A DNA stretch of 64,000 bases from Phaeosaccion multiseriatum. Lineage: Eukaryota > Protista > Ochrophyta, other classes. The stretch lies in NCBI GenBank assembly GCA_965112735.1, contig OZ218956.1:1364001-1428000 (forward strand), given 5' to 3'. The position numbers and the translations under genes were made by a program. The notes beneath the pieces were generated by a model. The model saw only the letters and a program-made list of their open reading frames with translations. It did not search any database and was not told the DNA's origin. Every line of letters starts with the position of its first letter. Within the stretch, counting starts at the first letter, position 1. Positions 20,655 to 61,769 of this stretch are shown here, in pieces.

Positions 20655-23600
20655 GGGCGTGTGTGCGTGCGTATGTGTGTGCGTGTGTGCGTGTGTAAGC
20701 GTGTGAGTGTGTTGTGTGCGTGTGTGTGTGCATGTGTGTGTGCGAGTCCCTTGAAGAAGGGAGGCCATGTCTTTTGTCGTGGGGTAAGGGTTAGGGACGG
20801 AATCTTTTGAGTTGTCCTGCATCTATTACTGTATCTGACCTTGCCTGTCCTGCATCTATTACTGTATCTGACCTTGCCTGTCCTGCATCTATTACTGTAT
20901 CTGACCTTGCCTGTCCTGCATCTATTACTGTATCTGACCTTGCCTGTCCTGCATCTATTACTGTATCTGACCTTGCCTGTCCTGCATCTATTACTGTATC
21001 TGACCTTGCCTCTCTTCTCTTGCCCACCGCTCAGCTCTACTCTGACCATATGCCTCTACTCTGCCCATACTTTGCTCTGCCGTTCCAAAGGTACCTCCGA
21101 ACCATCTACCAGCACGAGTGGAACGCCTTTGTGGAGCGAATGTGCCGTGAGTACTCCCTCCCCAAGGAGGAGCTGAATGGCAGGGAAGGCGGGGGAGAAG
21201 AGGAGGGAGAGGAGGAGGAGGGCGACACGCTAGGCATCTCCACTCGAGAGGTGATTCTCAGAGTGCTGGAGAAGATCTTGTTCGAGGAGGATGCCTCAAA
21301 AAAGAAGCAGCACAGTGAGTACTATGCCTTTGGCGAGGGTGCTAGCACCACCGGAGGAGGAGGAGGAGGAGGAGGAGGAGGAGGAGAAGTCGGAGACCAA
21401 CACGGCGAGCTTGACCACCTTGATCTCTTCCTGGCCAGTGCTGTAGAGCGGCAGGAGCAGGAGCACCAGGAGGAGGAGGGCTTGCTCCTGCCCCACCACA
21501 GCACCCCGACCGACGATCGTGATGGCGAGAGAAGTCGCTCTCGCTCTCGCTCTCCAGCCACTGCCATTCGTTACAGTTTGGACAAGTCTGGTCCCGTGGA
21601 GTCGGACGTGCGAAGACTGAGCAACACTTTGGCCGAGACGCTGGCCCGCAGCAAGAAGAAGCAGCAGCTCAGACGGCTGGAGGAGAGGCTGGAGGTGGAT
21701 ATTGAGGTGGCAGTTCAGCGTTGGGCCTCCTTTCGAGCACAGACCCTGGCCAGGACCGTTCGTGGGTTTATGATGTTTGGGAGAGCGATCCGTCTGCTGG
21801 CAGCGGTGGAGGTGAGGCACGAGTTTCAGCCGGAGGAGGAGGATGTTGATATTCGCTGTCCGAGCGACCTGGACGCTGCTGGAGGGGACGAGTGGACGCC
21901 ATCGATGGTGCTGAGCAACGCAACGCTCAAGACGGACAAGTGCGAGGAGTACGACAACAGCCTGGGGTTGGCCCTGCACGCCCACAGGTTGGTTGGTCGG
22001 TCGGTTGGTCAGTCAGAGGGGCCTCACACACTCTCGATGACTCACTCACTTACCTCACTCATTCACTCACTCACTCACTCACTCATTCGGTCGCTCACTC
22101 TCGCACGCACCTACTCCCTCACTCACTCATTCACTCACGCACGCACGCACTCACTCAAAGGAGGAGGAGGAGGAGGTGGAGGGATGGATGGGCGGGGTTG
22201 CCAAAGACATGTACCCTTCCCTCCTTCTAGCGTGTGCCTTGTTCCCCTGTCCCCTTGTGGTATCGGCTGCCATCTGCCTTATCACTTTTCTCCTTATGTG
22301 TGTGTTTTTCAGTTTTCAGTTGATGTAACCCTAGCAAGTATCGAACACCATAAATGGGATCGATGTACGTGTTGGCCCTGTGTTGACTATCCGCTGCCAC
22401 CTGCCTGGTCGCGTGTCTCCTTGTGTGTGTTCGCCTTGTGTTTACCTCGTCCTCGTGCGGCTTTGGTGTGTGCGTTGTTTGTGCCTCACCCCCGTGTGGT
22501 GCCCCCTGCGATTGATATGCCTTGTGTGTGGTATCTGCTGCCATCTGCATTTGTACATACCTTTGTTGCTGCAGGTATGTAGTGGCGGCGCAAGTGTACA
22601 AGGCTATGAAGGAGGGAAACGCCGCCGACAAGCAGAAGGCCAAGGCCATCGAGGACCTTGCCAAGGAGTACCCGGGACTGCACATTGCCTACGCGGATGA
22701 ACACGAGAATAAGCACTACTCGGTGAGGCAGGCAGGCAGGCAGACAGGCAGGGAGGGGGGGAGGGAGGGAGAGGGGGGGAGGGGGGGAGGGAGGGAGGCA
22801 GACAGGCAGGCATCGCAGTGAGACAGGCGGGCGGAGTCTCATGTATTGATACTCCCTTTCTTATCCTCCTCCTCCTCCTCCTCCTCCTCCTCCTCCTCCT
22901 CCTCCTCCTCCTCCTCCTCCTCCTCCTCCTCCTCCTCCTCCCCCTCCTCCTCCTACCCCTCCTTCTCCTCCTCCTCCTCCTCCTCTCGCTCCCGCTCCTC
23001 CCCACCCTCCTCCTCCTCCTCCTCCTCCTCCTCTACCTCCCCAGGTCCTGGAGAAGTGGGACCACACCTTGGGCCGTATGGTGGAGGAGTACCGTGTGGA
23101 ACTGCCCGGCAAGATCCTGCTTGGGGAGGGCAAACCCAACAATCAGAACCACGCCCTCATCTTCACCAGAGGGGAGGCGGTGCAGGCCGTGGACATGAAT
23201 CAAGACAAGGGCTTGGAGAATGCCCTTCGGTGCAAGCAGGTCGGGTTGGATGGGGAGTAGGGTGGGTGGGTGAGTTGTGCTTGAATTTGAAGGATACATT
23301 CTTCTTTCTTCGTGTGCTACGTATTATATTATTATTACGTGTCATTTTGAAGTCTTCTTTGTTTGCACATGCCCTTCTCTCTCCTACACCACCCCCTCCT
23401 CAACCACACCCCCACCGCAGCTGCTGGAAGAGTTCCAGTTTGGTGACAACTCGCACCCCAAGCGGAAGCCTCCCAACATTGGCCGCATCGTGGGCTATCG
23501 AGGTAAGGGGGGGCCGCGAGGAGGGCGGTGAGGGGGCGAGGAAGGGGCAGGGTTCGTGGGAAGGTGGGAATTACTTCATTGCCTTCCCTGCTGCTCCCTC

Positions 23601-24104
23601 TCGATACTTGCTGCACCAGCCGCTGCTCTCTCTCTCTCCTTTCTGCCTCTGTTGTCTCTCTCTCTCCCTCTCACACACTCTCTCTCTTCCCCTCTTCCTC
23701 CCTCGTCCTCCCTCCCTCCCTCCCTCCCTCTCTCTCTCTCTTTTGCGCCTCCCGTGGTGGCGTCACACATCAGAACACGTCTTTACGCACAACGTGTCGA
23801 GCCCTGCCTACTTCTTCTCGCTCCAGGTACGGGGCCTTCACCATTGCAATACTATTCCCACGCCATACCCGACCACACCACACCACACCACCACACCACA
23901 CACGTTTGCACACACATTCATTGACATAACACACCACACCACACTCCATGGCAAGATTCTGTCCCTTCTCTGTGTATCGAGTATTACGCTATCTTCCCCA
24001 GAGCCGCCCATAAACAAACCATCTCCCAACACTCGACTCTTCCCTCTGCCGCTTCCGCTGCCACTTGCCCCATAACCGCGCACACACACACAAACACACG
24101 CACG

Positions 24105-24179
<75 letters not shown>

Positions 24180-26648
24180 GCACGCACGCACGCACGCACG
24201 CACACATACACACATACACACACTCACCCCGCAGGAGCTGAACTTTGTAACGGCCACTCAGCGCGTAGTGAGTAACCCCCTCGAGGTGCGCTTCCACTAC
24301 GGCCACCCCGATCTCTTCGACAAGGTGAGTTTCAGTTTCGATTTGTTGTGGTCGGCTGTTGGCCTTGGGCCTGGGCAAGAAAAGTCAACGAATTGATCGG
24401 TCCGTGAACATATGAAAGACCCTTTTGTCCGCATGTTTGTAGAGTCAGAGGGGTCCAATGCCAACCCCGGTACTTTAAAGGAGGGAAGGAAGGAAGGAAG
24501 GAATGGAGGATTGAAGGAAGGAAAGAAAGGAAGAGAGGAAGGAAGGAATGGCGGGAGGGGGGGAGGAAGGGAGGGAGAGAGGAAGATATGTAGGAAGGAA
24601 GAGAGGAAGGGAGGGAGGAAGGGAGTGAGTGGGAAGATTGCCTTTCCTTGCACAGACTCTGGCACCCTTTCTCCCCTTCCTGATTGTACATGTCACACAG
24701 TTTCCCCCCCGGCGTCCTCATCTTTCTCCGCTTGTCTACTTTCCTCCCTGCCCATGCGTCCATATACCTCTATGCCCATATGCGTGTACCCATCCTCCCT
24801 CCTCACAGGTGACGACGATGACGATGGGGGGAATGTCCAAGTCCAGCAAGGGCGTCAACCTCTCGGAGGACATCTTCGCAGGCTTCAATTGGGTGCTGAG
24901 AGGGGGCGTGTCTACCCAAGCTGACTACATTGAGTGCGGCAAGGGGAGGGACACGGGCGTGAGTCAAATCACGGGCTTCACGGCCAAGATCAGCATGGGC
25001 AACGGTATGCAGGCGCGTTCAAGAGAGATTCATCGCCTGGCCTCTCAGTTCGACTTCCCCCGGCTCATGAGCTTCTACTACTCCACGGTGGGCGGCTTCA
25101 TGAACCAAGTCTTTCTCATCCTCAGTATCACCACCTTCATGTATTCGCGTGTGTACCTTTCCTTCGACCCCAACACTGCTGAGCTGGTGGACGAGCTGGG
25201 CAATCTGGATGGAGTGTCTGCCCAATACGCTCTTCAAGTGGGCTTCTTGCTCATCATTCCCATCCCTCTCGTCGTGGCCGTCGAGCGGGGCTTTGTAAAG
25301 GCGGCAAGTACATTTACGAGTATCCTTCTCCGCCTGGCCCCGCTCTTCTTCATCTTCTCCACCGGCACCAATGCCCACTACACCCACACGGCCATTACCA
25401 ACGGACAGGCCATCTACAAGGCCACCGGGCGCGGGTTTGCCATCAGCCACGAGCCCTTCTTGCAATCGTTCCAGGCGTACTTTTTGTCCCACTTCCAGCC
25501 CGCGTTCGAGCTGCTGGTGCTGTTGGTGATTTACGCCGCGTACACGCCGCTGCCAGCCTACAGTCTGGAGACGTACTCTGTGTACCTGGTTGTGATTGGG
25601 TGGATGTTTGTGCCCATCATCTTCAACCCCAAGGGGCTCGACATTACGTACGTGCAGGCGGGGGCGTCGCAGTACTGGAACTGGATGGTTTCCGAGGCGG
25701 CAGATGCACGCAGCTCGTGGAACGCCTGGTTCGACGAAATACTCCGAGACGAGTACCGCATGATGACGCACAAGAAGGTGGCTGCTACCGTACGGAGACT
25801 GCGCTTTGGCCTGCTGTCGTGGGGCTTTTTGAAGGCGTTCAATGACGATGTGAACTCCAAATGGTTCAATCTGGCCTGGGTCAGCGTCATTTCGGTGGGG
25901 GTGGTGGTGGTGATGCTACTCTTTTCGCTGCGTCGGACGGACCGGAAGCGCCGCGAGAGCAACATTGCCTTTGCGTACGAGAGCCGCATGTGCAAGCGTA
26001 TGGGCATCCTCCTCCTTATTCCGGCGGTGGTGCTGGCCGGTGTGCTGCTCGTCCTCACCACAGCCTCGCTGGGGCAGCTGCTCTCTCTCCTCGCGGGCTT
26101 CTTGTCCACCTTCTTTTTGATCACCAATATTCTCACCCTGTGGGTTAAGGACGCCGCCGTGACCATTGGCGCCGTGCGAACCGTCTTCTTCACCCTTCAC
26201 GTGGCCATTGGGGCTGTGATCCAGCTGCCGGTTCTCCTCCTCTCTCTGCTGCCCTTCCTTGCGGGCGTGCAGACGAGGCTGCTCTTCAATGCCGAGTTCG
26301 CGGACCGCTATGAGATCGCCAGGATCGTACAAGGCGAGAGGGAGCGACTCAAGGTTGGTGTTGGTTGATTGGTTGATTGGTTGGTTGCCTTGCTTGCTTC
26401 AAGACAGCACCATTTTCTTTTTGCTTTACTTCCAGTTCTCAGACTTCAGAAGTCCCGTTTCTCTTTTTTTTTCTTCAGTCATCAATCCCCGAGACATGTG
26501 CTGTGCCCCCCCTCGCTGGACGCTGATGCACAGCCCCCCTTCTCCCCCCCTTCTCCCCCCCCCCTCTTCCCTCCCCCCTCTCCCCTGTCCCTCCTCCCCT
26601 CCTCTGTCCCCTCCCGCCTCTGTACAGGTCGAGCTCAAGAAGGAATAG
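12997..26648 (+). CDS. 1,3-beta-glucan synthase (GT48, FKS/callose-synthase family), more than 15 exons
   Basis: Motifs in order: [31 protein letters not shown]|[151 protein letters not shown], then a multi-TM C-terminus. The terminal exon is probably 26628-26648. Confidence 0.96.
20813..21010. repeat. Perfect minisatellite, 6 x 33 bp (TGTCCTGCATCTATTACTGTATCTGACCTTGCC), intronic
   Basis: Six identical adjacent units with no spacers, read directly from the sequence. Confidence 0.95.
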
Positions 26649-34101: not shown

Positions 34102-34265
34102 ACTGATACTGCTTCTGCCGCCGCTGCTGCTGCAACCCTTCTCTGCTCTCCCCCCTCCTCCCCGGTTCCCTCCCACCAAAATTAAGCAAGGTTTGTGGGG
34201 GTGTTGGTTCTTTTCACAGATGGCGAGAGGAGATGATTTTGATTTCTCGAACGGAAAAAAAAAGG

Positions 34266-35985
34266 ATGAGGTTCGCTGTGGTGAGCTTCAACGCCAATAA
34301 TGCCCCTGTGACGCCAGAGGCCTGCGAAAAGCTCTTCGCTGGCATCGCTGGGGATGATGAGGAAGGGGGATTCGACGCCGTAGCCGTGGGTCTTCAAGAG
34401 TGTGGCGAGCGACCTCGAAGACTCATCCCGCCCATGCCCAGGGAGTACTTTGAGAAGGAGGAGCAGGAGCGACGCCGAGTGAATGCAACACATGAGAAGG
34501 TTGGCGGTGATGAGGGCGACGGCATTAATTATGGGGGTTTTTTGAGGGGCGACGAAGCGGGCTGCGAGGATCTTCTCAGCGCGGTCCAGGACCGGCTCGG
34601 GTGGTGCGACCTGGCGGCTGATGTGGCTATGGGGGAGCCCAAGTCCAAGGATGTGGAGGAACCGGCAGCAGGGGTCGGGTGGTACGGCTTCATCCGACTC
34701 TTGGTCTTCCTGAGGAAAGGTGAGGGGGAGTCACGTGGCACGGGTGGGTGTGGGAGAGTATTTTTTCTTGTACATGGAACAAGTCTGCCCTTTTTCTCTG
34801 CGCATGACAGATTTGTGCCTCCCTGCCTCCCTCTCCATCACGACTGTCTGCTCCCTTCTTTCCTCCTGCCTCCTCGTCTCAGGGAAGTATCCAAATCCCG
34901 ACATCACCACAATGGTCCTACCTCAGGGGGACAAGGAGAGTCACTTGTGTGACAAGTACGGGGGTGTTGGTTATCCCCCCAACAGGGCGCCTGACAAGGG
35001 AGTGGTAGCCGTGCTTCTGGGCTGTGAGGGCTTGCTCTTGGTCAACGGACATCTCTGTGGCACCAACAAATACTGCGTGTCGGAGGCTGTGTTTGATGAG
35101 GTGAGACTGCAGCAGCTCAAGGGGGTGCAAGCAGGCTTGGAGCAGTGCTTGCCTCCTCTACCACCAGCAGCAGAAGCAGCAGCAGAAGCAGCAGGAGAAG
35201 CAGCAGCAGCAGTTGGTGATGCAGCAGCAGGCGGAGCTGTGGGCCGGTGTCGACTGGTGCTCCTGGGGGATCTGAATTTCCGCGTCGAGGTGTTTTCACA
35301 GCCTGACGCCAAGGAGAAGGGCGGGCAGGATTTCCAAGCCGTCGTACGTCTACTCGAAGGTGCAGGAGAAGGAGGGGGGCAAGGTGGGGGTGAGGAGGAG
35401 GGCCAGCAAGCAGCGATTGGCTCCCGGGCTGCCGCACAGACAGAGAGTGCAACCGCCAAGACACTGAGACAGCTGTACCTCGAGAATGACCGGCTTCGGG
35501 CCCTCATGTCCGAAGGAGGGCCTCAGTGCCCGGAGCTGCTACGGGGATGCATAGACTGCCTGGGCGAGGCCTTGATGAAGGCCGCTCCGGGACAAGAGCA
35601 ACAACAACAACAACAACAACAACAAGGTGCAGACAGCAGCAGCACGAAGACGGGCAAAACCAACGGCAACCCCAATGCCCATGCCCCTGCCCATCCTACG
35701 GACCATGCCCCGGCTCTGATATTCCCCACCTTCACCTTCCGGCCCAACGCTCCGTGTCCGCGGCGTTACAACAGCAAACGCACCCCCTCCTGGACCGATC
35801 GTATCTTGCTTCGCGGTTTCCGCCCCCGCGCCTGCGAGTTCCGTTCGGTGAAGGACCTTTTGATTAGCGACCATGAGGCCGTAACATGCACATTCGGACT
35901 GGACTCTTGGGGACCCACCGACCCCGAGGAGCAGTTGGTGATACAGCAGCAGGAGCAGCAGCAGCAGCCTGAGCAACAGCGGTAG
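34266..35985 (+). CDS. Inositol polyphosphate 5-phosphatase (EEP fold), exons 34266-34719 and 34883-35985
   Basis: VVSFNAN, VAVGLQE, DKGVVAV, LLVNGHL, LLGDLNFRV, FPTFTF, KRTPSWTDRIL and ISDHEAV. Phase-1 GT-AG intron. Confidence 0.9.
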
Positions 35986-36118
35986 GCAAGCAAGCGCCTG
36001 ACTGGACTGAACAGACAACCTTGAGATGTTGCTGAATCCGGAAATCCGTACTTCTGATCTTTAAAATAAAGTGTTGTGTGTTGGAGCAAAATTCGGGACC
36101 TCGACGTACACAATGCCC

Positions 36119-36377
36119 CTCCTCCGAAACAGCCACGCGAGCGCTTTAACAACCCAATTTAACCACCCAAGAAGAGAAGCAGAGCGATCGATGCCTTGGC
36201 TCCAGCAGAGGGGACCCTTTGGAGGACGGGAAAGCCTGTGCTTTTGCGCTTCATGTATTCATAACAAAGCACACGGGTTTCTCATCTCCGAAGACATCCC
36301 TCTGCGGGAGCCAATAGGTACAACTCGGCGTCTCGTGTTGGGTGGCTGGGGTGACTCGCGCGGCTGTCTCGGAGGGG
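36119..36377 (+). ncRNA. Long imperfect fold-back hairpin 1 (candidate pre-miRNA)
   Basis: Core stem 36196-36244 pairs with 36266-36314. Further stems are 36161-36184/36324-36347 and 36119-36141/36355-36377. Confidence 0.5.
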
Positions 36378-36390
36378 TGTGGGGGGATGG

Positions 36391-36547
36391 AGGAGAAGCA
36401 GTTTCCCCTTGGCTCCTGTAGAGGGGCGCTTTGGGGGTTTGTAAAGCCTTGCTTTCACTTGATATTATATTCATAGCAAAGCACGGGTTTACCGATGGTC
36501 TCGAGGGTACCCCTTTGCTGGAGCCACAGTACTAATTGCCTTCTCTT
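36391..36547 (+). ncRNA. Hairpin 2, paralogue of hairpin 1 (candidate pre-miRNA)
   Basis: Core 36410-36455 pairs with 36478-36526 using about 9 G:U pairs. Basal stem GGAGAAGCAGTT/AATTGCCTTCTCT. Confidence 0.55.
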
Positions 36548-36647
36548 TTAAAGCTCTCTTTCCTACCTGGTATGGCTAATGAGCTTCTCTATTTCTAATA
36601 AGCTTCTCTAGTTGGAGCTCTCTTCCATGAAAAGATAAAAGGAAAAT

Positions 36648-36860
36648 ATGTGTGGATGTATGTATATATGTATGTGTGTATGTATGTATGTATGTATGTA
36701 TGTATGTATGTATGTATGTATGTCTATATGTGTGTGTATGTATGTGTATGCGTATATGTGTGTATGTATGTATGTATGTATGTATGTGTGTATGTATGTA
36801 TGGATGTATGTATGCATATATGTATGTATTGTGTATGTATGTCTAGATGTGTGCATGTAG
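36648..36860. repeat. (TATG)n/(TG)n compound microsatellite, intergenic
   Basis: Directly visible. Confidence 0.9.
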
Positions 36861-36908
36861 CTATGTAAATACATGTATACAACATGTGCGTGTGCGACTT
36901 GCTTGTGC

Positions 36909-39733
36909 TCAGTCATCATCCTCAAAGACCTCCACCCCCTGCGAGTAAAGCAAGGCCGGCAGGAGGAAAGTAGACACCACGCCCTGGAGACTGAGCGAGA
37001 GCGCTTGCACCCACCCCAAGGGCCCCCCAGCCACCGATTGGAACGCATCTGAATCGTTGCAGTCGGGCACGGAGGCGGGGAAGTACCAGCCCCAGGGAGG
37101 AGCCACTCCGAAGTGCTTGTAGCAGAGTTGCAGGGCGGAGAGCGCTTGGATCTCGGAGGCCTTGTTGGTGGCGGAAAGAGTGTGGCCTGAGAGGGGTTGG
37201 GGGGGAGGGAGGGAGGAGAGGGAGGAAGGGAGAGAGGGAGGAAGGGAGAGAGGGAGGGAGGGAGGGAGAGAGGGAGAGAGGGAGGGAGAGAGGGAGAGAG
37301 GGAGGGAGAGAGAGAGGGAGGGAGGGAGGGGGTGTAATGTGAGGAGGGGTGCGCTACTGGCCGCAGGAGATGTGCGGGGCTTGGCTGCTACTGCTGTGCT
37401 CCTTGCCCATGCCCCTTGCTTCTCACCGCAGTAGTGGATGCCGCTCTTCCCATTGAGACCTCGTCCTCCTCCTCCTTCTGTCTTGTCAATCATCATCGCT
37501 TCCCTCACTCTCCGATAGGCGGGGGTTGCTCTGACCCAGGGATAGCTGGTAGAGGCAACAATGCCGGCCCCTTCCCCTTCCCCTTCCCCTTCCCCTTCTT
37601 CGCCTGCTCCTTGCTGCTCCATCCCTTCTCCAACTTCAAGCCCAAGGCCGCCTTCTGTCCTGCTTTGTGGTGGTCTATCTCCGTCCCCGCCTCGACCTGA
37701 ACCTTTTGCTACGCCTCGTTGCCGCATGTCGCCTCCTGCTGCTGCTGCTGTATCACCAACGGCTGTATCACCAACTCTCGCACCGTCGCGCCCTCCCTTT
37801 CCTTCTTGCCCTCCCAAGGCCCTCCCCAGCAAGATTCCGTGGTGCGGTGTGCCCCTCGGATAGGACACGGACAGAACGGGCACCCCAGCCCCAGACAATC
37901 CCTCCGGGGCCGGAGGGGAGATCTCCGAAACATCGAACAATCCGAAGACGGCTGCGGCAGTCGAAGTGGCGGTGAGGGGGAGGACCAGTGGAGACACAAG
38001 AGTTCATAGTACAGTCGGAGTCGCGGCGAGGGGGAGGACACGTGGACGCACAAGAGCACAAAGTACACACACAAGCACACAGTGCGTAAGCACACAAGGA
38101 GAAAAAAGAAGAGAGGGGGAGGATAGAGGGAGAGGAGAGAGAGAGAGGTCCAGGAGAGAGAGAGAGGTCCACTGATTACGTCAGCGAGAGTGTCATGATG
38201 TCTATTGGGGTGATGAAGACAAATAGTGACGCGGGGTTGCCTTCAAGGAAGAGAGGCCGTCAGGAGAGGAGAGGAGCAAGAAAGGACAAACGCGCAGGGT
38301 GGAGAGGCGTCAGGAGAGGAGAGGAGCAAGAAAGGACAAATGCGCAGGGTGGAGAGCGTCTCACGTTCGTGTCGGTTGTCCCACTTCACCTCCTTCGCAT
38401 CTCCTTCGCTGACGGGGGGGGAGGGGAAGGCGGGCCATCGAGAAGAAGAAGGACGGAGGATAGTCACTGACAACATTGGGGGGAAGGGGGGGGGGAGGGG
38501 GGCACGATGGTAGAGGGAGAGGAAGAGGCAGCGGAGGAGGAGGAGGAGGAGGAGGAGGAGGAGGAGGAGGAGGAGGAGGAGGAGGAGGAGGAGGAGGAGG
38601 AAGGAAGGGCAGGAGTAAGAGCAGAGTGCGAGACGATAGAGACGCAGGGCGAGGAGAGAGAGTGATGAGGAAGATCAGACTCTCGACGATATAAAGTGAG
38701 TTAAGGCCGAGATTCTAGATGATATGCGTGGATAACTACCTGCCATCGGGGGGCAGAGGGGTAGGGGGGAAGGTGCAGGGCGGAAGTGGTACGCGTGAGG
38801 GAGGAGGTAGAGCAGCGGTGAGGGAAGAAGGCAGAGCAGCAGTGGTATGCCCAGTCACACACCACTCAACAAAATGCAGCAAGCAGACGTACCAGTGACC
38901 GCATCGCTTTGGATCTCCCCCAGGACCCGTCTGTGCTCTTCAAACGCCGCCTCCTCCGGCGAGAGAAGAGACCGCGCAATGTGGGGATGAATGGACAAGA
39001 TGACGTCATCGAAGTGTTCCTCTTCGGCCGTAACAGTGACCCCGCTGCTACTTGAGGGGGTGGAGTAGTGGACAGTAAGACAGCTACCATTTCCTCCTCC
39101 TCCTCCTCCTCCTCCTCCTCCAGCTGCTCCGGAAGCCCCTCCTCCTCCCCTGGTGATGCCCCCTACCTCCGCCCCGAGTCGCACCTCTCCGCCACGCTCC
39201 TCACACCCCTCCTTGAGGCCATCGGCAAGCTTGGTGTAGTCCGTGACATAGTACGCCGCCAGGGGGTCTCCGGTCTTGTCTTTCAGGCCCTGTAGGGGGG
39301 TGGGCCGGGGGGGGAGGGGAGGGTTCGGACGGGCTTGGCTGGGAGGAAGAGAGGCCCAGCTCAGGGGGGCAATGCATCAATACATTGACATATATGTGTG
39401 GACAGTGATCACATTCAAACTGCTCCCATCCCCCTCGCCCGCCTCAGCTGTACGCTCACCTGCTCCAAGCCATCGATATGCGCCAGCACCAACGGCAGGA
39501 CCTTGGGAGGCGCCCTCTCCATGGCCAGCCTGCGGTACAGACTGAAGGGGGAGGCAAGGGAGAGTGAGAGGCCGACATGTCAGTCTTCGCTTGATGAGGG
39601 CCTCCGAGTTGGGGCATGGATGTACATGTGACACTTACTCACCCGAGGATGCCCGCGTCGATTTTGGAGGGTAGACGGCCCTCACACAAATCAAGCACCA
39701 GATAGCGGAAGAACACCTGTGTTTGGCCTCATC

Positions 39734-58036: not shown

Positions 58037-59417
58037 AGGGGAAGAACAAGGGCAAGGGCAAGGGCAAGATCAACATGATGAGGTGAAGGCGTGAGGGTGT
58101 CAAGTCGAGAACGGAAGGAGGGGGAGGGGGGGGGGCGTACTTTGGTCTCCCACCCACCTACCCACCCTCCCCCCCCCCTTGAGGAGGGAGGAGCTGCTGT
58201 TGATGCTAACCAATGGGTTTTGGCGAGACGAAAGTTTGGCCTGGGTCAACTCTCTGTACCTACTATGGGCACACCGAAAGAACCGACGAGAGAGGGAGGG
58301 GATGGGCCGTTGCGGAACCTGTCTCTTTCAGTCCTTGTCTGTTTCAGCCGGCGTAGACGGGACCGACTGTCGCACAGGCATAATTTGGCTGCCAAGAGGA
58401 TAAAACACTCGTCCCTCTCTATCTGCAAGCTGTGGGAGCTTATCATTCTCCCCGGCACTGCGCGAAAAGGGAAAGCGGGAAGGGGCAGCGGCAGGAGCAG
58501 CACGAGCAGCAGGAAGAGGATGACGAGGAGTGGAAGCAGTAGAGGAGGAGAGGAGGGAGCTCAGCGGTACTGCAATGAGGCGGCGGTAGAGCCTTGGTCT
58601 TGGCCTTGGCAACCCCCCTCCACCACCACCACGGAAGGATGACACGTGAGACAGCAGCAGGCTCCCCTTGCCCCCTGAGCGAAGAAAGGAGGAGACGGGA
58701 GGGACTCAACCAGTCTCAGCCGGGCGGGATGGGAGAGGGTTGAGGCTCCGATTCCGTCTACCCCTCCCACCTTACTCCGTCCGCCTCATGCCATGGAGGC
58801 ATCTCATCTCTCGCCCTCCCTCCAGCGCTGTGGTGTGCAAGGTCTGCCGTTTACGTGTGTATGGAGCACAGCACAGACAAGGGGAGTGTGGGGGAGGTGT
58901 GCTGTCCTCCCTTCAAAGAGTCGTCTGCGCCCCTTCGCAAGGGAGGGAGGGAGGCCCACTACCTCTCAGTCAGACCTTTTGCTGCTAGCGAGCTGTTCGG
59001 AGGGACGCGCAAGGGGAAGTGGAAAGTAGCATCTTTTCCAAGAAGCTTTTTTAATATATAAAAAGGCGCTGTATATATATTTATATATGTATATGGAAAT
59101 GTATAGGGTTGTACGGCCTTGTGTGTCTCCGAGTGTCTTCGTTGAGGCATGAGAGCACTGTAGGCGTGATTTCCCTGACACCCGTAAAACACCTCTACCT
59201 TACGTTTCCTGGTGATGGAAGGGATTCAGCCCTCCGCATTCTCGACTTGGAGAGCAGAAGGAATGGCGGCCTTGCCGGTCGGATCCGAGGCTGCCGGCGA
59301 AACTCCATTACCTTCCTTTCCATGCCGCTCAACGTTGACGACAGCCTTTTCGTGCAAGCCATCAACAAAGTACCTTGGAGGCAGACTGGGGGGCCCGGTC
59401 CGGCACGGGTCTTTTAT

Positions 59418-61769
59418 CTATTCCTCTCCAGCAAGACAAGTGCCCTTCTTGTGCTCTCCTGCATTGCCACAAGCACCAATCGCAGAGCTGTACGTGATGA
59501 CATTGGGTTGAAGCCCTTCCCTCCTCATCTCCTTCAGCAAGTCAAGCGCCTTCTCGTGCTCTCCTGCGTTGCCAAAAGCAGAAATTGCAGAGCTGTATGT
59601 GATGACATTGGGCTGAAGCCCTTCCCTCCTCATCTCCTCCAACAAGTCAAGCGCCTGCTCGTGCTCTCCTGCCTTGCCACAAGCAGAAATCGCAGAGCTG
59701 TACGTGATGACATTGGGTTCAAGACATTCCCTCCGCATCTCCTTCAGCAAGTCAAGCGCCTTCTCGTGCTCTGCTGCCTTGGCGCAAGCAGAAATCGCAG
59801 AATTGTATGAGACTTCATTGGGTCGAAGCCCTTCCCTCCGCATTTCCTGTAGCAAGTCTAGCGCCTTCTCGTGCTCTCCTGCGTTGCCACAAGCAGACAT
59901 CGCAGAGCTGTACGTGATGACATTGGGTTGAAGCTCTTTCTTCCGCATCTCCTTCAGCAAGTCAAGTGCCTTCTCGTGCTCTCCTGCCTTGGCGCAAGCA
60001 GAAATCGCAGAATTGTATGAGACTTCATCGGGTTGAAGCCCTTCCCTCCGCATCTCCTTCAGCAATTCAAGCGCCTTTCCGTGCTCTCCGGCATTGCCAC
60101 AAGCAGAAATTGCAGAGCTGTACGTGATAACATCGGGTTGAAGGCCTTCCCTCCTCATCTCCTTCAGCACTTCAAGCGCCTTTTCGTGCTCTCCTGCCTT
60201 GGCGCAACCAGAAATAGCAGAGCTGTACGTGATGACGTCGGCCTGAAGCCCTTCCCTCTGCATCTCCTCCAGCAAGTCAAGTGCCTTCTCGTGATCTCCT
60301 GCCTTGCCACAAGCACCAATCGCAGAGTTATACGTGATGACATTAGGTTGAACACCCTCTTTCTGCATCTCCTCCAGCAAGTTCAGCGCCTTCGCGTGCT
60401 CTCCTGCACTGCCACAAGCAGCAATCGCAGAATTGTACGAGACGTCGTTGGGTTGAAACCCTTCCCTCTGCATCTCCTCCAGCAAGTCAAGCGCCTTCTC
60501 ATGCTCTCCTGCCTTCCCACAAGCACAAATCGCAGAGTTGTACGTGATGCCATCGGGTTGTATGCCTTCTTCTCTCATCTCCTCCAGCAAGTCAGGCGCC
60601 TTCTCGTGCACTCCTGCCTTGGCGCAAGCAGATATCGCAGAATTGTACGAGACGACATCAGGTTGAAGGCCTTCCCTCCGCATCTCCTCCAACAAGTCAA
60701 GCGCCTTCTCGTGCTCTCCTACATTGCCACAAGCAGAAATCGCGGAGCTGTACGCAAAGATATTGGGTTGAAGCCCTTCTCTCCGCATCTCCTTCAGCAA
60801 GTCAAGCGCCTTCTCATGCTCTCCTGCTTTGCCACAAGCAGAAATTGCAGAGCTGTACGAAACTTCATTGGGTTGAAGCCCTTCCCTCCGCATCTCCTCA
60901 AGCAAGGCAATCGCCTTCTCGTGCTCTCCGGCATTGCTGCAACCATCAATCGCAGAGCTGTACGAGAATCCGTCAGGTTGAAGGCCCTCCCTGCGCATCT
61001 CCTCCAGCAAGCCAAGGGCCTTCACGAGCTCTCCTTCCTTGGCACATGCATCAATTGCAGAATTATACGAGAATTCATTGGGTTTAAGCCCTTCCTTGCT
61101 CATTTCCTTCAGCAAGTCAAGCGCCTTCTCGTGCTCTCCCGCATTTCCACAAGCAGATATCGCAGAACTGTACGAGATGACATTGGGCTGAAGCTCTTCC
61201 CTGCGCATCTCCTCCAGCAAGGCAAGCGCTTTCTCGTGCTCTCCTGCCTTACCACAAGCAGAAATCGCAGAGTTGTACGTGATGACATTGGGTTTGAGGC
61301 CGCTTGCTTTCGTCTCATCGAGCAGAGCAAGCGCACCCTTCCATCTCCCTGCCTTACCCACCGCAGTAATGGCCGCGCTAAAGATGATGACGTTCATTTG
61401 AACCCCCTCTGCGTTCGCCCCTTCAAGCGCTCTGGCCACCCCTCTCCAGTCCCGCATATTTCCAAGTCTCTGGATCTCTTTGGTCAATGCTATTTGCTTC
61501 TGTCGTTCTGTGCTTGTACCATCTCGTCGCTGCCGCGTCTTCATCAGATTACCCCGGGTTCCAAGGAGGCGGGGCGAGTGAGTCGCCGATCGCCGCCCAG
61601 CATGCACATGCTGGGCGGTGAGGCCAGGGTGCGCAGGTGAAGAGGTGGAGGGAGCAGAGGCCCATCCTCCCCACGAGTGTGCGAAAGCAGAAGCAGCAGG
61701 AGGAGCACCGTCTCCACCAGCAACTCCTCCTGCTGGGGAAATGAAGCCCGCCACGGTTTTGTCCGTCAT
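59418..61769 (-). CDS. Intronless P-type pentatricopeptide-repeat protein, 18 complete near-identical repeats plus a truncated 19th
   Basis: 35-aa repeats with consensus VITYSSAISACGKAGEHEKALDLLEEMRREGLQPN. First in-frame ATG at 61769. Confidence 0.95.
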   Translation of the reverse strand: MTDKTVAGFISPAGGVAGGDGAPPAASAFAHSWGGWASAPSTSSPAHPGLTAQHVHAGRRSATHSPRLLGTRGNLMKTRQRRDGTSTERQKQIALTKEIQRLGNMRDWRGVARALEGANAEGVQMNVIIFSAAITAVGKAGRWKGALALLDETKASGLKPNVITYNSAISACGKAGEHEKALALLEEMRREELQPNVISYSSAISACGNAGEHEKALDLLKEMSKEGLKPNEFSYNSAIDACAKEGELVKALGLLEEMRREGLQPDGFSYSSAIDGCSNAGEHEKAIALLEEMRREGLQPNEVSYSSAISACGKAGEHEKALDLLKEMRREGLQPNIFAYSSAISACGNVGEHEKALDLLEEMRREGLQPDVVSYNSAISACAKAGVHEKAPDLLEEMREEGIQPDGITYNSAICACGKAGEHEKALDLLEEMQREGFQPNDVSYNSAIAACGSAGEHAKALNLLEEMQKEGVQPNVITYNSAIGACGKAGDHEKALDLLEEMQREGLQADVITYSSAISGCAKAGEHEKALEVLKEMRREGLQPDVITYSSAISACGNAGEHGKALELLKEMRREGLQPDEVSYNSAISACAKAGEHEKALDLLKEMRKKELQPNVITYSSAMSACGNAGEHEKALDLLQEMRREGLRPNEVSYNSAISACAKAAEHEKALDLLKEMRRECLEPNVITYSSAISACGKAGEHEQALDLLEEMRREGLQPNVITYSSAISAFGNAGEHEKALDLLKEMRREGLQPNVITYSSAIGACGNAGEHKKGTCLAGEE

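Follow-up and report, generated by a model that had tools for sequence, protein, structure and literature searches.

A tandem pair of paralogous fold-backs between two convergent genes of an ochrophyte alga: a candidate plus-strand hairpin-RNA or proto-miRNA locus

Genomic setting and copy number

In the present study, we analysed a pair of fold-backs that occupies, at 36116-36552, a 923-bp gap with two convergent genes on either side (Table 1); all positions refer to the window, which is the whole 64-kb stretch of DNA that was analysed. The hairpins begin 131 bp past the stop codon of the plus-strand gene and end 357 bp short of that of the minus-strand gene, and an AATAAA motif at 36065-36070 lies between the former stop codon and the first fold-back (unit 1). 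The last exon of the plus-strand gene has a Pfam match to PF22669 (5-phosphatase type; C-terminal part), and the 163-nt intron of this gene (34718-34880, GT..AG) is confirmed by a spliced contig of the run X5, which is described below. A search with the protein of the 5-phosphatase exon returned a Pylaiella protein at 32% identity as its sole match. On the opposite side, a Pfam search with the minus-strand exon at 36909-37186 gave no match, and the gene to which it belongs is for this reason given as inferred.

Table 1. Positions of the two fold-backs, their best-conserved blocks and the neighbouring features
Feature	Position	Strand	Remarks
Upstream gene, inositol polyphosphate 5-phosphatase type	CDS 34233-34717 + 34881-35985	+	Stop codon 35983-35985
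Unit 1, full fold-back	36116-36382	+	Core enclosed by an outer stem (36116-36170 with 36336-36382); about 100 pairs
Unit 1 core	36171-36335	+	Homologous to unit 2; basal stem GAGAAGCAG... to ...GTCTC; loop near 36244-36263
Unit 1, best-conserved 5' arm block, CCTTGGCTCCAGCAGAGGGG	36194-36213	+	Pairs with 36297-36316; duplex of about 20 bp
Contig of run X5 (341 nt, depth 9.6)	36327-36640		Spans unit 2 completely and extends into the microsatellite
Unit 2 fold-back	36390-36552	+	61 pairs including 12 G:U; good fold on the plus strand only
Unit 2, counterpart of the conserved 5' arm block, CCTTGGCTCCTGTAGAGGGG	36407-36426	+	Pairs with 36510-36529
Microsatellite (ATGT)n/(GT)n	36650-36850		Between unit 2 and the minus-strand gene
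Last coding exon of the convergent gene (inferred)	36909-37186	-	A long polypyrimidine tract with AG precedes it; last residues ...FEDDD, then stop

Judging from the proteins encoded in the window, the source alga is an ochrophyte (stramenopile) related to brown algae. These proteins are 32-53% identical to brown-algal ones, and the label "brown alga" is thus not established. Elsewhere in the window, large plus-strand ORFs of the GT48 type at 20807-26365 carry the Pfam domain PF02364 (1,3-beta-glucan/callose synthase); they share 38-53% identity with brown-algal GT48 proteins, and a Phaeothamnion fragment is 85% identical to the GT48 of the window over a short stretch only.

The locus looks single-copy. 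In the DNA run X1, an unbroken 722-nt unitig spans 35981-36640 at a depth of 93, with single-copy flanks at 98 and 113, and no other X1 DNA contig matched the locus at a likeness of at least 80%, the range that this copy-number test covers and below which more diverged copies would fall. Within the 64-kb window, a pattern search allowing up to three mismatches, blastn and tblastx all returned the four arms of the two units and no further copies. The ends of the units (36116/36382 and 36390/36552) showed no convincing target-site duplication, with a possible ATG at those of unit 1. An active MITE is therefore unlikely, and the many copies with target-site duplications by which the first-pass annotation would have recognised a MITE did not emerge.

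Regarding described families, neither hairpin could be assigned by sequence or structure to any miRNA family at the level of Rfam 15, and they differ in this respect from Rfam miRNA families, with which they share no sequence similarity; the "bicistronic miRNA" reading of the first-pass annotation is that of a candidate. A gathering-level scan of the whole window gave no matches, and an E-value scan of 35000-38000 (E up to 10) gave no family for the hairpins. The match to MIR6019 was set aside as chance (17.6 bits, with the gathering score at 100), and sub-threshold matches to mir-297, mir-466, mir-3149 and mir-1277 fall on the microsatellite at 36650-36850 and were discarded as composition artefacts. 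A metagenome scan with the conserved 5' arm CCTTGGCTCCNGNAGAGGGG yielded 17 matches, which is approximately the number expected by chance, and the complementary 3' arm was found near none of them. In a relative from the same study (run X6), no match was obtained at 80% likeness, even to the coding exons.

We also looked for genes from which the arms may have been derived or which they may target. Comparisons of the locus with the rest of the window by blastn and tblastx gave low-complexity or chance matches only, and no target-like sites for the arms were found within the window. A stretch of the unit 1 5' arm (36192-36209) matches three repeat units of a PPR array at 59775-60632 at 16 of 18 positions and would be antisense to the PPR mRNA. 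The Smith-Waterman scores of all four arms lie within the range of shuffled sequences, so that this match was attributed to chance and the PPR array was rejected as the origin or target of the arms.

Folding and duplication of the two units

Both units are strong folders, and they differ in their dependence on the strand. Unit 1 (36110-36385) has a minimum free energy (MFE) of -143.7 kcal/mol on the plus strand (z -10.1) and -144.7 kcal/mol on the minus strand (z -10.6), with none of 200 shuffled sequences folding as well. Unit 2 (36386-36560) reaches -73.3 kcal/mol on the plus strand (z -4.8; 0/200 shuffles as good) versus -49.2 kcal/mol on the minus strand (z -1.6; 11/200). The plus-strand folding advantage on which the first-pass annotation made its reading depend is thus borne out for unit 2, in which it amounts to 24 kcal/mol, and is absent from unit 1, which has no strand preference. 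When folded together on the plus strand, the 471-nt stretch gives two independent hairpins with no cross-pairing (-220.2 kcal/mol versus -198.1 kcal/mol on the minus strand). A sliding RNAfold scan of the window placed both units among the best folders of normal complexity, and the stretches that scored above them were low-complexity repeats. A second strand-biased fold near 59000 was weak (z -2.5) and was dropped.

The relationship between the units is evident from two direct repeats, CCTTGGCTCC.G.AGAGGGG and GA(A/G)GAGAAGCAG, each of which is present in two copies at spacings of 213 and 219 bp, respectively. The cores (36171-36335 and 36390-36552) are approximately 76% identical from end to end, with the basal stem and some of the loop positions also aligned. 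The description from which this study started, namely two related fold-back units about 213 bp apart between convergent genes, holds with this spacing of 213-219 bp and with the convergent orientation of the flanks, and the arm pairings that it quoted for both units were recovered in the MFE structures. The same applies to the differences that it regarded as preserving pairing: the change from G-C to T-A beside the AAA/TTT helix is located at 36230:36281 versus 36442:36495, and that from GCAGAG/CTCTGC to GTAGAG/CTTTGC through G:U pairs was seen at 36206:36304 and 36208:36302.

In order to compare all four arms, the 3' arms were reverse-complemented and aligned with the 5' arms. Several arm-to-arm differences are common to both units, namely, AAAGCC versus AAACCC (a G.G mismatch), CCT versus CCG, and a mismatch just after TGGCTCC; this alignment agrees with the earlier observation that A.G versus U.U (T.T) and G.G mismatches are situated at equal positions in both units. 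Since mismatches common to both units are older than the duplication, an existing hairpin was copied in tandem, and the four-arm comparison shows that the whole hairpin, not plain sequence, was duplicated. An indel (TGTG versus TG) distinguishes the units and occurs correspondingly in the 5' and the 3' arm. Furthermore, only unit 1 has an outer stem, the 3' arm of which (36336-36382) repeats in reverse complement the sequence at 36116-36170, directly upstream of the core.

The blocks that are best conserved between the units (Table 1) pair with each other to form a duplex of approximately 20 bp, which is the size of a miRNA/miRNA* duplex. In this lower-stem duplex, after TTGGCTCC..., 16 of 17 positions are paired in both units, with one mismatch in common. 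Both units are single hairpins in which at least 15 nt of the candidate miRNA are paired with the opposite arm with no large bulges, as is expected of a miRNA precursor under the stringent criteria applied to Ectocarpus and Saccharina.

Strand asymmetry and transcript coverage

The changes that keep pairing were counted in two ways, both in a comparison of two paralogues only, which has almost no statistical power for covariation. RNAalifold applied to the two cores gave 24 lower-stem pairs, 17 of which were unchanged, six changed on one side, one altered at both positions (from A:U to G:C) and none lost; all six one-sided changes go to or from G:U. When the fold of unit 1 was projected on unit 2, 36 of 60 pairs were the same, seven one-sided and two two-sided changes kept pairing, the latter including the G:C to U:A change at 36230:36281 versus 36442:36495, and the remainder were broken or shifted (five pairs) or fell in gaps (10 pairs), which leaves about 50 pairs that can be compared. 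Divergence between the units was 15% at stem positions versus 40% at non-stem positions (p 0.003), a test given little weight because positions mutated in unit 1 are scored as unpaired and bias it.

A comparison of arm against arm is more informative about the strand. Unit 1 is symmetric, with five G:U and six A.C, and unit 2 has 12 G:U versus two A.C, besides nine transversion mismatches and seven gap positions; a two-sided binomial test of the 12:2 split gives p 0.013. The G:U excess in unit 2 that had been noted at first pass is thus present, at counts that differ from the roughly nine G:U and one A.C given for its core: 12 and two in the whole unit, and eight G:U in the core fold. A plus-strand-specific tolerance of, or bias to, wobble-compatible transitions is a real signal in unit 2. 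When polarised against the other arms, the changes in unit 2 are mostly C>T on the plus strand, with one or two A>G.

The total arm mismatch of unit 2 is about that expected from neutral decay since the duplication, so that the asymmetry of G:U versus A.C alone argues for selection. Considering this asymmetry, the 24 kcal/mol advantage of the plus strand and the two changes on both sides of a pair, selection on a plus-strand RNA structure is suggested, and template switching, arm conversion or strand-biased mutation could yield the same pattern. The first-pass annotation had called the pair a duplicated, selected RNA structure; the duplication is upheld by the old mismatches in all four arms, and the selection is suggested rather than shown.

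Transcript coverage was taken from the run X5, which is recorded as "DNA?" and comes from a sample that differs from that of the assembly. One X5 contig, with a depth of 264, joins the 5-phosphatase exons directly, the 163-nt intron being skipped; the exons have depths of 130-300, and no contig covers the intron. X5 splices the intron and covers exons only, and it therefore behaves as RNA. A further X5 contig covers unit 2 (Table 1); it starts at 36327, at the foot of the core hairpin of unit 1 and immediately on its 3' side. There was no X5 coverage over 35981-36326, a stretch that includes the stop codon, the AATAAA motif and all of unit 1 up to that position, and the share of sampled words in X5 (0.58) is consistent with a real gap here. 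Either the 3' UTR of the 5-phosphatase gene is very short, or it is different in the X5 strain, or it was lost to filtering.

The contig over unit 2 carries an A>G difference at 36528, which is probably a strain allele and by which the U36409:A36528 pair of the plus-strand fold of unit 2 becomes U:G. Contigs of this type are built from 31-letter words and give neither the strand nor the true ends of an RNA, and they cannot hold 21-nt reads. The contig could represent a plus-strand transcript, the part that remains once unit 1 has been cropped, or 3' UTR sequence of the minus-strand gene; in the last case, unit 2 would be read in its poorly folding sense.

A candidate hairpin-RNA pair and its alternatives

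The reading that we favour, tentatively and as a candidate whose probability falls somewhat short of even, is that of a plus-strand hairpin-RNA or proto-miRNA locus that a local duplication has expanded. According to this proposal, an inverted repeat that already had a few mismatches and formed a fold-back of approximately 165 nt would have been copied once in tandem. After the duplication, unit 1 would have gained or kept its long outer stem, and unit 2 would have drifted almost wholly by changes that preserve the pairing of the plus-strand RNA. Low-level plus-strand transcription from the gap between the convergent genes may deliver both hairpins, each of which a Dicer-type RNase III would then cleave. 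Unit 1, the near-perfect stem of which exceeds 100 bp, would give hpRNA/siRNA-like products, and unit 2, with a bulged, G:U-rich stem of approximately 60 bp, may be closer to a miRNA precursor in its behaviour. The candidate small-RNA duplex is the best-conserved lower stem of approximately 20 bp, UUGGCUCC.../...GGAGCCA, and the candidate product starts with U. A stronger version of this proposal, in which the units form one two-member miRNA family that is truly processed, and the host is a stramenopile that branches either outside the brown-algal lineage or deep inside it, appears rather unlikely.

The locus may be compared with the miRNA systems of brown algae. In Ectocarpus and Saccharina japonica, miRNAs are mostly 21 nt in length with a 5' U, and derive mainly from genomic hairpins with unusually long foldbacks of 170 and 183 nt on average, respectively; clusters are rare, and the few that exist are mostly pairs of related loci that local duplication has produced, with 76% identity in one Ectocarpus pair (PMC4513859, PMC5381526). 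The present units are similar in the length of each core (approximately 165 nt against averages of 170-183 nt), in an origin in genomic hairpins rather than transposons or genes, in forming a related pair that is also 76% identical, and in a candidate product beginning with U. Long-term conservation of the sequence is not expected in either case: miRNAs are not conserved between Ectocarpus and Saccharina, and none have been found in other stramenopiles (PMC4513859, PMC5381526). The differences are that 75% of Ectocarpus miRNA loci are inside genes (PMC4513859, PMC5381526), whereas the present locus is intergenic and is known from its sequence and predicted folds, and that its host, with proteins only 32-53% identical to their brown-algal counterparts, may fall outside brown algae, where miRNAs have yet to be validated; the validated ones reported to date come from Ectocarpus and Saccharina.

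A further comparison is with hpRNA or long inverted-repeat siRNA loci and the "proto-miRNAs" of plants. Unit 1, with its near-perfect stem of more than 100 bp and an equal fold on both strands, has a form typical of such inverted-repeat small-RNA loci when young, and unit 2 resembles a subsequent, degenerate stage that is closer to a miRNA. In the plant proto-miRNA model, the arms are an inverted duplication of the target gene, whereas the arms of the present hairpins match no gene in the window.

The alternative that survives best, and which we regard as a serious possibility somewhat below our favoured reading, is that the units are neutral DNA palindromes, produced by template switching or inverted duplication, copied in tandem, and kept alike in their arms by further switches or arm conversion; the G:U excess in unit 2 would then reflect strand-asymmetric mutation, such as C>T on a non-template strand or a lagging-strand template. 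Template switching is documented as a source of perfect stems and of multibase changes that look "compensatory" but require no selection (Monttinen and Loytynoja 2022, PMC8794818), and the present locus resembles the hairpins of that work in three respects: a reverse-complement copy of adjacent sequence lengthens the stem, the "compensatory" differences between arms are multibase and include an indel, and the maintenance of pairing can be accounted for at the DNA level. The outer 3' arm of unit 1 simply reverse-complements its upstream flank, and the matching TGTG/TG indel is more easily obtained by one template switch than by two independent deletions. The lack of a strand preference in unit 1, in energy as well as in its five G:U and six A.C, the neutral-decay level of arm mismatch in unit 2 and the preponderance of C>T among its polarised changes all fit this alternative. 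However, the mechanism alone predicts no strand preference, and unit 2 has a marked one: the 12:2 asymmetry still requires a strand-specific process, the simplest of which is plus-strand transcription. Arm conversion also leaves unexplained why the paired lower-stem blocks are the best conserved between the units, and unit 2 is covered by an RNA-like contig. A template-switch origin is, moreover, compatible with a later RNA function and does not exclude it.

A different role for transcribed hairpins would be that of a structured mRNA element that belongs to the long 3' UTR, or to the read-through tail, of either convergent gene and affects stability or termination; it may serve as a fail-safe cleavage site of the RNase III type or keep the convergent transcripts from overlapping. 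Long 3' UTRs are typical of brown-algal-type genomes, the hairpins are situated exactly between the convergent genes (131 bp and 357 bp from their stops), and the X5 contig is continuous with the microsatellite toward the minus-strand gene and stops at 36327, the foot of the unit 1 core. The first-pass annotation had raised the possibility that the 5-phosphatase 3' UTR spans the region; the absence of X5 coverage past the stop codon, together with the AATAAA motif before unit 1, indicates instead that this UTR probably ends short of the hairpins. A 3' UTR of the minus-strand gene would carry the poorly folding strand, against the plus-strand G:U bias, and contig ends do not map RNA ends. We consider this explanation distinctly improbable.

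Least credible, and in our estimation very unlikely, is the decayed relic of a fold-back transposon or MITE, left by one or two insertions into this intergenic gap: unit 1 is nearly all palindromic over 267 bp, in the manner of fold-back elements, the site is intergenic and adjoins a microsatellite, and miRNA-like hairpins are known to originate from MITEs (cited in PMC4513859), but the window holds no second copy (up to three mismatches; blastn), the unitig is unbroken at single-copy depth with no other DNA contig at 80% likeness or above, neither unit has a convincing target-site duplication at its ends, and the units are tandem paralogues with internal mismatches in common rather than independent insertions.

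Returning to the favoured plus-strand hairpin-RNA or proto-miRNA locus, its significance depends on whether small RNAs arise from the two units. If they do not, the locus would illustrate that DNA-level processes can create and maintain strong hairpins, even "compensated" ones, which is a useful caution. If they do, it would be a clean case of the birth of a miRNA from a genomic hairpin followed by local duplication, in which unit 1 with its near-perfect stem and unit 2 with its degenerate one, a young and an aged copy side by side, would represent two stages in the maturation of a hairpin to a miRNA at one locus and bear on the proposed link of miRNAs to complex multicellularity (PMC4513859). 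Were the units a genuine miRNA pair, a miRNA system of the brown-algal type, with long foldbacks and a 5' U, would predate or parallel the multicellularity of brown algae.
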